This document shows, piece by piece, positions 50,692-62,547 of a stretch of DNA of 64,000 bases. Within the stretch, counting starts at the first letter, position 1, and each line of letters starts with the position of its first letter. The position numbers and the translations under genes are program-made. The notes below the pieces were generated by a model. The model was not told where the DNA came from and did not search any database. It worked only from the letters and a program-made list of their open reading frames with translations. The stretch is from Paragordius varius. Taxonomy: Eukaryota > Animalia > Nematomorpha. Location: positions 9,176,001-9,240,000 of the forward strand of contig OZ176050.1 of assembly GCA_964247055.1 (NCBI GenBank). Reading direction: 5' to 3'.

Positions 50692-50994
50692 CCATTTAAA
50701 ATTCAAATTCACCCTTGAACAATTCAAATTCCCCCTTCACCATTCAAATTCACCCTTGAACAATTTAAATTCTCCCTAAAATAAATTAGGTTTTTTTAAG
50801 ATTAAAAATTACCTATATTTTATAATATTAAAATATAAAATTCTGTTCAAAAGTAATATAACGCTGAAAAAATAATAAACAATATCGTAAAAATATATTT
50901 CATATTAATGATGAGTTATATTATCCCGAAAACACAAAATTTATTTTTAGGATGAATTTGAATTGTTTAGGGGTGAATGTGAATTGGATATAGG
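50692..50994. mobile_element. Foldback-type MITE family A, copy 3 (intergenic)
   Basis: TA|CCATTTA left end, four ~21-bp subrepeats, the same core as copy 1, and a degenerate right arm ending ..tagg|TA. Confidence 0.82.
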
Positions 50995-51676
50995 TATTAA
51001 AAACAACAATGCATCTAAAAGTTTTATAAATTCATCAGTTCCGCGAACCCTAAAAAACATTTGCATAAATCAATAATATATTTTTTGAGCATTTTTGAAA
51101 ATTAATCCCACAAAGATTCAGTAATGGGATTCCTAACGTACTTTGTACATCAAAATATGAATAGGAAGAATTTTTTCATTTTAAAAGTTAATAGTTAATC
51201 AAAAGTCAATATGTTGATATGTTTTATAGACATCCGATTTTTATTTGCAGACCCATCAAAATTGGTAGCAAAACGTGAAACGGACACGGGGGAAGTTATT
51301 GATATTATCAATTGATAAAATGGTGCAAAATATCAATCGAAGCATTTCCGATGAAATGATTTATAAGTTAAAATTTATTCATTTTATATATAATAATTAT
51401 AACTATGATTTTTTATTTTTAACTGGATATTAAACATCAAAGCTGTAGAAGTAACAAAAATGTTTAATTGTTTAATTTTTTATATTATAGGTACATCAGG
51501 ACCTAAACTACTTGTGATAAATAAAGAAGTAACAAAATCATCCCAAGATAAGAGAACTAAAATGCATTTTGGAAAATAAAGTGTTACAGCTTCAAAAAGA
51601 AGTTTTAGTTCAAGAAAAACATTAAAATAAATATTTATAATAATTGATACTGCAATAATTTATTTATATTACATTA

Positions 51677-54600
51677 CTAGCGTGAATCTCGTGCTGCTAC
51701 GCAGCCCGAGGAAGTCCTTCGGACTTATGGAGGGGGGGTTCGAAGTTTGGATTTGAATGGGTCTACCGTTTTTCCTGTACAAGATCACAAAGCCAGCATT
51801 TTCCATTTTTATAAATATATAGATGAGGATAAATAATGTATTAATATCCATATATCTTTTAACATGCTATGCATATGATAGATACTCCTTACTCAGCATC
51901 TATCATCAAAGAAACGCTTGACTAAAATTTTTGCCTTTTAACAGGCAATACGAAAAATCTTTCTCGAATTTTTACAGTCTCATACCGTGGACAAAAAAAT
52001 ACAATCAAAAAAATATTTTTGTGGACTTTGTTTTTTTTGAAAAAAATGGCATTTTACGGGGGTAGCGGGTAAAAAGAGGGCCTAAATCAAAAAAGTGACT
52101 CGACTATGTTCAGCGCGATCAAAAATAAGTAAACAAAATTCATATTTGAAATTGAATGGTCCAACACGTTCTCCAAAAAATTGACTTAACCCATTTTTCA
52201 CACGGGGTGGGCCCGAACTGGGGACCTAATTCCAAAAAAGGGCGAAGCTATTGTCGGGGCATTCATTAATGATTATATTTTTTCGATATTTGGATTTGAT
52301 TGGGATCACCGGTTTTCCGGAAACAGTTCACAAAGTTATATGAAAAATCAGTTTTTAGCGGGTAGCTCCTTACCCAGCAGCTATCATCAAATAAACGGTG
52401 GACTAAAATTTTTGCCTTTTAACAGGGAATACATGGAATCTTTATTGAATTTTTACGGTCTCATACCTAGGGCGAAAAATCGATTTAGAAAATTATTTTT
52501 GTGGACTTTGTTTTTTGAAAAAAATGGCATTTTACGGGGGGAGCGGGTAAAAAGAGGGCCTAAATCAAAAAAGTGGCTCGACTATGTTCGGCGCAATCGA
52601 AAATAAGTAAACAAAAATTATATTTGAAATTGAATGGTCCAACACGTTCTCCGGAAAATTGTCTCAAAAACACGATTTTGTGGACTTCTGTTTTCAAAAA
52701 AACCCGTTTTTCATACGGGGTGGGCCCGAACTGGGGGCCTATTTCAAAAAAAGGGCGAAGCTATTGTCGGGACATTTATTAATGATTATATTTTTTCGAT
52801 ATTTCGATTTGATTGGGTCTACCGGTTTTCCTGTACCAGATCACAAAGCCAGCATTTTCCATTTTTATAAATATATAGACTAGCGTGAATCTCGTGCTGC
52901 TACGCAGCCCGAGGAAGTCCTTCGGACTTCTGGGGGGGGGGGGGGGAGTTCGAATGCTATACATATGATAGATACTCCTTACTCAGCATCTATCATCAAG
53001 GAAACGCTTGACTTAAATTTTTGCCTTTTAACAGGCAATACGAAAAATCTTTCTCGAATTTTTACAGTCTCATACCATGGGCAAAAAAATACAATCAAAA
53101 AATATTTTTGTGGACTTTGTTTTTTTTTGAAAAAAATGGCATTTTACGGGGGGAGCGGGTAAAAAGAGGGCCTAAATCAAAAAAGTGACTCGACTATGTT
53201 CGGCGCAATCGAAAATAAGTAAACAAAAATCATATTTGAAATTGAATGGTCCAACACGTTCTCCAAAAAATTGACTTAACCCATGTTTCACAGGGGGTGG
53301 GCCCAAACTGGGGACCTAATTCCAAAAAAAGGGCGAAGCTATTGTCGGGGCATTCATTAATGATTAAATTTTTTCGATGTTTGGATTTGATTGGGTTCAC
53401 AGGTTTTCCGGAAACAGATCACAAAGTTATATGAAAAATCAGTTTTTAGCGGGTAGCTCCTTACCCAGCAGCTATCATCAAATAAACGGTAGACTAAAAT
53501 TTTTGCCTTTTAACAGGGAATACGTAAAATCCATATAGAATTTTTACGGTCTCATACCTAGGGCGAAAAATCGATTTAAAAAATTATTTTTGTGGACTTT
53601 GCTTTTTGAAAAAAATGACATTTTACGGGGGGAGCGGGTAAAAAGAGGGCCTAAATCAAAAAAGTGGCTCGGCTATGTTCGGCGCAATCGAAAATAAGTA
53701 AACAATAATCATATTTGAAATTGAATGGTCCAACACGTTCTCCGGAAAATTGTCTCAAAAACACGATTTTGTGGACTTGTGTTTTTTAAAAAAACCCGTT
53801 TTTCATACGGGGTGGGCCCGAACTGGGGGCCTATTTCAAAAAAAGGGCGAAGCTATTGTCGGGACATTTATTAATGATTATATTTTTTCGATATTTGGAT
53901 TTGATTGGGTCTACCGGTTTTCCTGTACCAGATCACAAAGCCAGCATTTTCCATTTTTATAAATATATAGATGAGGATAAATAATGTATTAATATCCATA
54001 TATCTTTTAACATGCTATACATATGATAGATACTCCTTACTCAGCAGTTATCATCAAAGAAACGCTTGACTAAAATTTTTTTCTTTTAACAGGCAATACG
54101 AAAAAACCTTCTCGAATTTTTAGAGTCTCATACCGTGGACAAAAAAATACAATCAAAAAAATATTTTTGTGGACTTTGTTTTTTTTGAAAAAAATGGCAT
54201 TTTACGGGGGGAGCGGGTAAAAAGAGGGCCTAAATCAAAAAAGTGACTCGACTATGTTCGGCGCAATCGAAAATAAGTAAACAAAAATCATATTTGAAAT
54301 TGAATGGTCCAACACGTTCTCCAAAAAATTGACTTAACCCATGTTTCACAGGGGGTGGGCCCAAACTGGGGACCTAATTCCAAAAAAAGGGCGAAGCTAT
54401 TGTCGGGGCATTCATTAATGATTAAATTTTTTCGATGTTTGGATTTGATTGGGTTCACAGGTTTTCCGGAAACAGATCACAAAGTTATATGAAAAATCAG
54501 TTTTTAGCGGGTAGCTCCTTACCCAGCAGCTATCATCAAATAAACGGTAGACTAAAATTTTTGCCTTTTAACAGGGAATACGTAAAATCCATATAGAATT

Positions 54601-55029
54601 TTTACGGTCTCATACCTAGGGCGAAAAATCGATTTAAAAAATTATTTTTGTGGACTTTGCTTTTTGAAAAAAATGACATTTTACGGGGGGAGCGGGTAAA
54701 AAGAGGGCCTAAATCAAAAAAGTGGCTCGGCTATGTTCGGCGCAATCGAAAATAAGTAAACAATAATCATATTTGAAATTGAATGGTCCAACACGTTCTC
54801 CGGAAAATTGTCTCAAAGACACGATTTTTGTGGACTTCTGTTTTTTAAAAAAACCCGTTTTTCATACGGGGTGGGCCCGAACTGGGGGCCTATTTCAAAA
54901 AAAGGGCGAAGCTATTGTCGGGACATTTATTAATGATTATATTTTTTCGATATTTGGATTTGATTGGGTCTACCGGTTTTCCTGTACCAGATCACAAAGC
55001 CACATTTTCCATTTTTATAAATATATAGA
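51677..55029 (-). mobile_element. Composite non-autonomous Helitron-like element: two units joined head-to-tail (55029-52880 and 52879-51677)
   Basis: The minus strand begins A|TCTATATATTTATAAAAATGG at 55029 and ends CACGCTAG|T at 51677: an A-T insertion site with no TSD. A GC-rich hairpin lies 7-12 nt upstream of each CTAG. The internal junction reads CTAG|TC at 52880/52879. No Rep/helicase ORF. Confidence 0.82.
51865..55029. repeat. Dimeric tandem array, (A about 0.49 kb + B about 0.52 kb) x3, period about 1056-1092 bp
   Basis: A monomers start near 51865, 52955 and 54013; B monomers near 52358, 53449 and 54507. A and B are homologous (shared gtggactttg, gagggcctaaatc, gaatggtccaacacg and gggcgaagctattgtcggg blocks). 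Confidence 0.95.
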
Positions 55030-56088
55030 TTAACCATTTAAATGTAGCGTAGAATAGAAAATAATTTTAGCAATAATTGGAAATAATAAATCGCATGTTT
55101 TCCTCTATCTGCGATTCTTTTTTCTTTCAGATAACTATAATATCCACAATATCTTTTATTTTTAATACCTCTTCAAAACTGTCATCATTCTTTCAAAAAA
55201 TGTCCCATGTTTAACAAAACTGACAGATTCTAATAAAATTGATTAATGTATCTAGGAATTCTCATTTTATTATAATGGGAATCGGCGTTTTAGCTGACCT
55301 AAGATCACCTGATTTTGCCATGCATCAGTTAATAATAATCTTTAGCTATAAGTAAATATCGCCCTTAAAATATTTAAACACTTTTTAAGATACTGGAATA
55401 TCTTATAATAAATTTTTAGGAAATGCTGAACTCGTGGTAAAATAATAGGACAGTGATTTTAAGGGCAAATTATCTCAATAAGGTGACGGGTTAAATATTA
55501 AAAACTATCTATATTTTATAATTTTAACATATTTTCAATTGGTTAACTTGAGTAAGTGTGATTGTATTGAATGTTTATCTTTTAGGTGGCTTGTTTCATA
55601 AATTTTGAGTGTAAATGATGAAAATAAATTCCGTAAAATTTTAATTGTATGGCTAAAAATTGACTCGGTATTTTTATCACCTTCAAGTGTAAACTTGCTG
55701 GCTTAACTAAATCTGGGCGTATTTTACCCGACCTTTATCTATATAAATAATGCTGACCATTTCTATCACACAAAATTTGATTTAAATTTTCTTTCGTCTT
55801 CAAATTTATGTTAAATAAAAATGGTTTTTTTAAAATTCACCAAAATTTAAAATAAAAGATTCTTAAATCAAAATGAAGCGATAGCGTTCAGCATAATCGG
55901 TATAGAAAAAGTGTTTATGAATATATAAATCGTTGTTATACCGTTTCCATAATGCTTCCAATTGAAGTATGAACAAAATTTTGCTGAAATTAAATTATTG
56001 AAAAAGCGTAAAAAATAATTTTAGTTAGTAAATTTGACATTGTATTAAAAAGTTTTAGAAATCTTGGTTTTTGTGCGCTTATTTTAAT

Positions 56089-60771: not shown

Positions 60772-62547
60772 TTATGTTTCTCGTAAATGCGGGAATGTTG
60801 GCATAAATTCAGGTTTACACGGGTAAGGACTTTCACGAAAGTATGGGCTTTCTAAGGCACTTGCAGCAGTTATTCTATAAAGTGTAAAAAATATTAGCTT
60901 TAATCAAAAATGGTTTGTTTATTGATGAATGAATGATATTGTATACCGTTTTTTGGGATCATAAGCTAATAATGAAAAGAGAAGGTTGATGCCGTTATCG
61001 GATAACCATTGAAACGTATTTTTAATGCTATTGTATTTTTGCTGTTTTAGTTCAAATTTTTTGATCATGGGTAATGTGCTAAACCCTTCCCATATTTTTT
61101 CATTCGGTGTTCCCAGTAAATCAATAATCAAGCTAATTTGCTGTAATTCAGATTTTCCTGGCAGCAGTGGCTTATGTAATAACAATTCGCCCAAAATACA
61201 TCCAGCGGCCCTAAATAAAAACACATACATCAAATTAAAACGATTACTTCTTCGAAATAATATAAAAAATATGGTACACATATTTTGAACGTATCGTATT
61301 CTCGATTTATTAGACAAATTATTTTTTATGCACAATGTTATTATTATTTCTTAAAACCACTATGCATTCTGTTTTAATAACCAGTCAAAAATTTTACACA
61401 AGTTATATAATGTGGTATAAAACTTTATACAAATTTCAAAATGCGAGTTTTTAAGAATCTTCTTATTAATGATATTTTAAACCAATTGGATGGATTAATT
61501 TATTTGTTGTGTTTAATTATAATGTAAAATGACTGGGTATGACCGTGAATTTATAACGGTGAGCCGGCTGTTAAATTTGTATAGGCCAAAAAACCCCATC
61601 AAAAAAATATTGTGAACCTTAAACCGGTTTCAAAATAATATAAAAATAAATGGTTATATTTCCGATGTAGTATAGTGACATTCATAGTGGTTTAAAGCTA
61701 TCAATAACTAATCCAATTAATTGTTAAATAATTAGGCATAAAAAGAAAAAACCAAATGTCAATCGCCGTTGTTTGAGCCTTTGAGCCAAACAAAAGTTCT
61801 GGTGCTCTATACCACATAGTAACCACGTTCGGTGTTAACAATGATTCAGGAGGATTGCCAAACTTGCGAGCTAGACCAAAATCAGCTAAATATTATTCAC
61901 ATAAATTAACCAATTTTTACGGATCCAAAATCATTCATTAAAAGGTTTGAAACTTTTATATCACGGTGCAAAATATATTTAGAGTGCAAATATTTAAGGC
62001 CATTTAACACTTGAATCATAATACATTTGACCTGATATATTTGTATGAAGTTATACCTGTGCCTCTGTAAAGGGCTTTTGCATATAATCCAATAAGCTTG
62101 CCAAATCTTGTTCACAATATTCCATAACTAAATATATACTCTGTAAACTATAAATCAAAAGTTTAACTTATCATAATTTTTCCCAATCGCTATATCATAA
62201 ATTTTAATTATATTTGGATGAGGGTCATCATCCTTAAAATAAAGAATAAAAAACCATGGACAAATGCAGCAGTAAAGATATTTCTCGCAAAGAAGTAAGG
62301 GGAATTTCTTTATCCGACAAATTTTCACTATTTGTTCGAATTTTTTTAAGTGCGACGATTTTCTGACTTTCCTTATCAAGAGCCTTATATACAACTCCAT
62401 ACGTCCCTTCGCCAAGTCTTTTTAATTTTTTATATTTTTCAATCGATTTACAATTATTATGCTTGAACTATAATTAAAAAATGCGATTACTAAAAAATTC
62501 TTATCTAACAAATATAATTTATTTGAAGAATCCTCCATATCTAACAT
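60772..62547 (-). CDS. CDK10: Cyclin-dependent kinase 10, 348 aa, 8 exons
   Basis: Exons 62491-62547, 62255-62467, 62168-62232, 62057-62147, 61911-62031, 61753-61885, 60947-61210 and 60772-60874 total 1047 nt in frame. Motifs are [65 protein letters not shown] and C-terminal [12 protein letters not shown]; the set favours CDK10 over CDK11. Confidence 0.9.

Follow-up and report, generated by a model that had tools for sequence, protein, structure and literature searches.

Two abutting non-autonomous Helitrons in a horsehair worm genome, probably joined by consecutive insertion

We analysed a 64,000-nt stretch of the genome of the horsehair worm Paragordius varius (hereafter the window; positions given without a contig name refer to it). 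On its minus strand, a 3353-bp block runs from 55029 to 51677, that is, from the T of a first TC to the G of a last CTAG. The block starts with TCTATATATTTATAAAAATGG right after host A 55030 and closes with ...GAGATTCACGCTAG right before host T 51676. Within it, the assembly sequence has the 3' end of one Helitron, ...CACGCTAG, abutting the 5' end of another, TCTATATATTT..., at 52880|52879, and no spacer separates the two. An earlier note on this DNA had described an exact tail-to-head join with no intervening base, inside a 3353-bp block between host A and T, and both descriptions were correct. The parts of the block, read in the direction of the elements, are the following.

55030..55030, minus strand: host A on the 5' side of the block
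51677..55029, minus strand: whole block, two abutting non-autonomous Helitrons with four heads and two tails, between host A and host T
52880..55029, minus strand: copy 1 (upstream, 2150 bp), head-body-linker (u1, 1058 bp) followed by head-body-tail (u2, 1092 bp); 'direct-tail' subfamily
53972..54011, minus strand: 40-nt linker, GTTAAAAGATATATGG...TTATCCTCA, leading from u1 to the second head; an internal join without a tail
52880..52953, minus strand: tail module of copy 1, made of TCGAAC, T plus 15 C (52946..52932), twin GNA-triloop hairpins, 11 nt and CTAG
52878..52883, minus strand: CTAG|TC junction (CTAG 52883..52880, TC 52879..52878), the sole true tail|head join genome-wide (25-mer, up to 2 mismatches)
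51677..52879, minus strand: copy 2 (downstream, 1203 bp), head-body-linker (u3, 1056 bp) followed by partial head, poly-C and tail; the majority architecture in the family
51824..51863, minus strand: 40-nt linker as in copy 1, here leading from u3 to the partial head of copy 2
51744..51823, minus strand: partial fourth head, 80 nt, ahead of the copy 2 tail
51677..51743, minus strand: tail module of copy 2, made of TCGAAC, C7-T-CC, twin hairpins and CTAG, with one mismatch to the copy 1 tail
51676..51676, minus strand: host T on the 3' side of the block

The array structure of the block was taken from a repeat search in the window. Tandem Repeats Finder left the array unreported, its period of 1058 bp being longer than the 500-bp limit of the program. 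The 51-nt tail matched the window twice, exactly at 52880-52930 and with one mismatch at 51677-51727, and the 27-nt head matched it four times, with starts at 55029, 53971, 52879 and 51823. When the sequence was shuffled 100 times, neither motif was matched once. Folded as single-stranded DNA, the tail is predicted to form two adjacent hairpins with three-base loops, which end 11 nt upstream of CTAG; the fold had an energy of -15.3 kcal/mol (z = -4.8), and 0/200 shuffles folded equally well. A fold spanning the tail|head junction brought no gain over the tail alone. An Rfam scan of 51400-55300 with E up to 1 returned no match, so the body holds no recognisable captured RNA gene. Between TCGAAC and the first hairpin of the tail lies a poly-C tract (window 52932-52946, minus strand) that ranges from about 7 to 23 C across approximately 50 other copies, often with a single T interruption; the position of this homopolymer within the end signal is fixed, whereas its length is hypervariable.

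The surroundings of the block were searched as well. Its 300-nt 5' flank is unique in the genome. The 3' flank, from about nt 7 onwards (window 51377-51670, minus strand), belongs to an old dispersed repeat, of which six contigs hold eight other copies (68-76% identity), so that the Helitron block borders on another dispersed repeat. With a unique 5' flank and an old repeat as the 3' flank, a search of the genome with both flanks for a paralogous empty site found none. Seven ORFs around the block had no Pfam match other than a weak kinase fragment at 60919-61335. Two short tandem arrays with a 21-bp unit, AATTCAAATTCACCCTTGAAC or a related one, are present at 50700-50777 and 50946-50986, about 0.7-1 kb from the block.

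Next, we placed the two copies within their family. The genome (110.5 Mb in 44 contigs) is very AT-rich, and it contains 868 family tails (31-mer, up to 3 mismatches) and 2228 heads. Both copies in the window have canonical Helitron termini: TC at the 5' end (TCTATATATTT...) and a CTRR-type CTAG at the 3' end (...CACGCTAG). Terminal inverted repeats are absent on direct reading, the first 15 nt (TCTATATATTTATAA) being unrelated to the reverse complement of the last 15 nt (CTAGCGTGAATCTCG). Among the loci read, all 41 distinct sequences that follow tails begin with T (41/41), and all 23 distinct outer sequences that precede heads finish with A (23/23); the termini therefore mark insertion boundaries elsewhere in the genome too, as had been proposed for a genome search to check. 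The complete copies L002, L003, L010, L017, L020, L021, L024 and L025 have paired flanks without a target-site duplication. Canonical Helitron1-type features are all present, namely TC/CTRR ends, a subterminal hairpin, an A|T target, no duplication and no inverted termini, and they confirm a canonical non-autonomous Helitron family of this type. The identification as Helitrons with an A|T target, also made in the earlier note, is borne out by ends, hairpins and flanks alike. A Helentron or Helitron2 assignment, which would call for short terminal inverted repeats, subterminal palindromes at each end and insertion between T and T, was considered and rejected, since this family lacks inverted termini and uses an A|T target.

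Internal heads behave differently from outer ones. In the genome loci read, they are preceded by the conserved 40-nt linker (...ACATTATTTAT-GGTA/CCTC-A) and not by a tail, and the linker variants found before internal heads genome-wide end in ...CCTCA or ...GGTAA. About a quarter of the tail flanks read are (TA)n tracts, and TA microsatellites look like preferred targets of the family.

We then compared the two copies with each other and with the rest of the family. Their architectures differ at the tail. In copy 1, the tail is joined directly after the body, which ends ...CATATGTATAGCAT (...ATAGCAT), while in copy 2 it is joined after the 80-nt partial head. The direct body-tail join (CATATGTATAGCATTCGAAC) occurs at nine dispersed places in the genome, and one of these, in L010, is a solo 1085-bp direct-tail element with its own A and T flanks. 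The eight others are at C1:13922820, C2:5587007, C2:12751675, C2:11011930, C5:1036836, C6:1773675, C6:2833334 and C4:10181624. Dispersal of this join over nine places, together with the solo element, indicates a sublineage that transposes on its own. The layout of copy 2 is that of most of the 29 tail-centred loci.

The units also differ in sequence. The two units of copy 1, u1 and u2, are 98.4% identical, while u3 of copy 2 is 96.5% identical to u1 and 96.4% identical to u2; approximately 3.6% of the sites differ between the copies. Thirty sites, at positions 74 to 1011, separate copy 1 from copy 2, and we compared them with 25 units from other parts of the genome. For 28 of these 30 sites, each of the two states turned up among the 25 units as well, and these differences are thus inherited polymorphisms of the family. 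Unit u3 has the majority state at most of the separating sites, and its closest matches lie far away: a unit on contig C1 at 10.9 Mb, 1.7 Mb distant, is 99.4% identical to it, and units on contigs C5 and C8 are 98.9% identical. Private changes are few (none in u1, one in u2 and two in u3). Seven states are common to u1 and u2 only, and the marker 972C of u2 is also present in the solo direct-tail element of L010. Since the differences are mostly shared polymorphisms, and since no unit has more than two private changes, the divergence of about 3.6% predates the juxtaposition. Thus, the two joined elements belong to different sublineages of one family and differ in architecture, both have hardly mutated since they arrived, and the divergence between these neighbours is far older than their juxtaposition.

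The join itself is unique in this genome. Only one of the 868 tails abuts a head, and a genome-wide search for further tail|head joins (25-mer with 2 mismatches; 15-mer with 1 mismatch) found none besides 52880|52879. Whatever else matched in the junction search was a tail with (TA)n behind it, except for one look-alike (L072), in which something other than a head lies downstream. At these mismatch limits, the further CTAG|TC joins for which the earlier note had recommended a search were thus not found in the rest of the genome. A close counterpart is a pair on contig C6 (L069, G000:C6:2544074-2547098; C6:2545590), in which positions 307-2217 of the locus hold two family Helitrons of the same orientation, 16 nt of (TA)n apart. 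The first element (307-1512) is composed of head, body, linker, partial head and tail, like copy 2, and the second occupies 1529-2217. This pair shows that plain insertion of neighbours in the same orientation does occur.

No autonomous Helitron lies within the window, as had been stated before our analysis; matches to Rep (Helitron_like_N) and to the Pif1 helicase were found elsewhere in the genome, and all the good ones are broken by stop codons. One of the loci is a decayed Helitron of autonomous type on the minus strand of contig C8 (G000:C8, 2816973-2828000; L083/L084), with the order Rep, Pif1, tail. Its parts are as follows.

C8:2827626-2828000, minus strand: body-like 5' region upstream of Rep, matching body positions 143-529 of the non-coding family at 87% identity
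C8:2823927-2824424, minus strand: Helitron_like_N (Rep), E 4e-45, with stop codons
C8:2819377-2820008, minus strand: PIF1 helicase, E 4e-41, with stop codons
C8:2816973-2817020, minus strand: family tail of the C8 element, 47/48 nt matching

This element is a decayed autonomous relative that shares the family tail. A search for a Rep/Pif1 element with the ends of the family, suggested together with the search for joins, thus led to the C8 element, whose tail matches at 47/48 nt and whose two genes carry stop codons. The C8 element also contains an inverted extra Rep fragment at 2817195-2817719 (plus strand) and a head-like piece of the non-coding family at about 2822517-2822701. Just past its tail, positions 3291-6185 of L083 on the minus strand (G000:C8:2811290-2814184) contain an open frame of 964 codons with Exo_endo_phos and RVT_1 domains, apparently an intact ORF of a non-LTR retrotransposon. 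A second Rep-bearing remnant was found on contig C1 (L085, G000:C1:10588000-10597999). There, an open frame of 259 codons (L085:7373-8152) spans the C-terminal half of Helitron_like_N (E 5e-29), a Rep fragment in the opposite orientation lies 2 kb upstream of that frame, and body-like sequence of the non-coding family is present at L085:3051-3441.

Which process could have formed an exact join between two such elements? We consider it probable that the two elements, separate non-autonomous members of one abundant Helitron family, inserted consecutively, a reading that is favoured by the origin of the two copies from different branches of the family. Copy 2 (52879->51677) would have been the first resident, with a host A in front of its 5' TC. 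Copy 1 (55029->52880), from the direct-tail sublineage, would then have integrated canonically between the host A and the opening T of copy 2. The product would be A, copy 1 (TC...CTAG), copy 2 (TC...CTAG) and T, without a spacer. We infer this order of arrival, copy 2 and then copy 1, from the A|T rule alone; the reverse order is disfavoured because it would require a G|T target, which was never seen in the boundaries read. The earlier note had mentioned insertion of one copy at the A|T in front of another as its alternative, and this alternative fits best with the differing architectures, with the separate sublineages and with an identity of 96.4% between the neighbours vs 99.4% to a distant unit.

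How often such an adjacency should arise by chance depends on the model. If each of 868 insertions chose A|T sites uniformly, 0.013 exact same-orientation adjacencies would be expected. A position-weight model of the target, derived from the observed flanks, raises the expectation to 0.13-0.23, although this model is rough, built as it is from 41 + 23 flanks and a 64-kb background. The expectation is higher here because heads start with TCTATATATTTAT and because the 5' flank of a resident element is an already chosen half-site; the TA-rich head boundary may thus be a somewhat favoured target. When internal heads are counted as targets too, the expectation becomes about 2.6 times higher. Judged by these models, one observed adjacency would be unremarkable to mildly surprising. 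What counts against consecutive insertion is that the modelled chance expectation stays below one (0.01-0.6 by model), and an extra pull towards the head boundary, or some other joining mechanism, may have contributed.

Adjacent Helitrons with a CTAG|TC junction have been described in maize, where they were judged to be consecutive insertions because the elements differ (2008, BMC Genomics 9:51, PMC2267711). The maize study weighed both explanations, and its canonical option was an A|T target made of a host A and the first T of the resident (PMC2267711). As in the horsehair worm, TC follows directly after CTAG in the maize pair, the join is G|T and the elements differ. The maize elements, however, contain captured gene fragments that are unlike each other, and they were tested by PCR across inbred lines, whereas the horsehair worm pair belongs to one non-coding family with internal tandem units and is known from one assembly.

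The strongest competitor of consecutive insertion is that the join was formed in an intermediate, either as a hetero-dimer ligated by Rep and inserted once, or by a circle of copy 1 that recombined homologously into copy 2 within the first ~180 nt. In the former route, the freed 3' CTAG of one mobilised element would be ligated by Rep to the tyrosine-linked 5' TC of another. Either route would yield exactly the observed sequence, an HUH Rep does join a 3' OH to a 5' phosphotyrosine end, circles exist (PMC4778049), and a chance expectation below one for sequential adjacency also speaks for it. Moreover, the first diagnostic difference between the copies lies at position 74-184, so that a crossover in the head would be invisible. 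When the units were tested for the mosaic that homologous integration of a circle would leave, no switch of similarity was seen along them beyond the first ~180 nt, and the homologous route therefore needs a crossover within the first ~17% of 1 kb of homology. No such hetero-dimer was found in the Helitron literature examined, there is no second example among the 868 tails, and the pair spaced by 16 nt on contig C6 demonstrates that plain neighbouring insertion happens. We regard an origin in an intermediate as unlikely.

In a broader form of the same idea, the join would come from the chemistry of a Rep that handled two elements simultaneously, and not from a chance insertion next to a neighbour. 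This could take place in one of two ways. The host-A|TC boundary of the resident, nicked by Rep to start transposition, might be the preferred acceptor; or Rep might ligate two mobilised elements to each other, the tail of the first to the head, linked to its tyrosine, of the second. We hold this to be doubtful. If it were true, tail|head joins between unlike Helitrons would offer a natural readout for how a eukaryotic HUH transposase joins ends in trans.

A further possibility is that the composite was built at another locus and moved here whole, in a transposition that read through the internal tail and stopped at the following one. Bypass of the terminator is documented for Helitrons (PMC4778049), and the whole block has canonical A and T flanks. 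However, outside this block the junction 25-mer has no counterpart in the genome except in the look-alike with its non-head downstream sequence, and a moved composite would merely shift the origin of the join to another locus. This scenario is improbable.

The main proposal of the earlier note was a fossil rolling-circle concatemer, in which a single circular intermediate would be copied more than once and the multimer integrated between A and T. Several observations from other systems make such an event conceivable. Helraiser, a reconstructed bat element, forms circular intermediates with a CTAG|TC join (Grabundzija et al. 2016, PMC4778049; 2018, PMC5876387); the join in these circles is precise and the circles are active donors (PMC4778049). 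Perfect head-to-tail joins and tandem Helitrons were reported from Myotis lucifugus (Pritham & Feschotte 2007, as cited in PMC2267711 and PMC5876387), and according to the same two citing papers the bat joins were interpreted as concatemers. Data mining of plant and bat genomes has likewise uncovered head-to-tail joins and tandem Helitrons (PMC5876387). The junction at 52880|52879 is likewise exact and contains no host base. But replicas of one circle are expected to be each other's nearest relatives and to have a single architecture. The two copies are 2150 and 1203 bp long, their tails are joined differently and ~3.6% of their sites differ; u3 is 99.4% identical to a distant copy vs 96.4% to its neighbour, with at most two private changes per unit, and the differences are almost all polymorphisms inherited from separate sublineages. 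Real tandem arrays of this family are joined by the tail-less 40-nt linker, and only 1/868 tails abuts a head. Given the unlike architectures, the identity of 96.4% and the presence of both states elsewhere at 28/30 sites, the concatemer proposal was not supported, and we assign it a very low probability. The least probable explanation is an assembly artefact that mis-joined two separate elements: the region is repeat-rich and includes a 15-C homopolymer, but mis-joins fall in shared sequence while tail and head have no homology, the outer flanks follow the A|T rule, and copies 3.6% apart are easily distinguished.

Comparison with the animal systems points out where the horsehair worm pair stands. 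The joins of Myotis lucifugus, as described in the papers that cite them, are similar in that a 3' end meets a 5' end exactly and without a host A, which was taken as a trace of rolling-circle replication; by the same descriptions they are tandem repeats of one element, whereas the partners here come from different sublineages. Helraiser has in common with the family the CTAG|TC join, the 5' TC, the 3' CTAG, the subterminal hairpin and the A|T target, but its joins were observed in episomal intermediates of a single element from cell culture, in contrast to a chromosomal join of two unlike elements here. Tandem arrays of Helitron origin are known from Xenopus (PMC12001565). With regard to arrays of many heads and one tail, each copy here is a small example, with two heads and one tail and with joins made by the 40-nt linker; those arrays have no internal tail, whereas the block contains the single place where a tail meets a head. 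Both the arrangement and the two explanations for it are therefore already in the literature, from maize and bats, and with consecutive insertion as the preferred reading the present case is resolved as the maize one was.

For annotation, the block should be recorded as two elements and not as a single element of 3.35 kb; beyond annotation, its significance is small. An exact CTAG|TC join in an assembly is not by itself evidence for a rolling-circle multimer, and replicas can be told from neighbours by comparing the partners with the rest of their family, as was done in maize. In conclusion, the horsehair worm, in which every Rep/helicase copy found is broken, provides another animal genome with a very abundant and recently active family of non-coding Helitrons.
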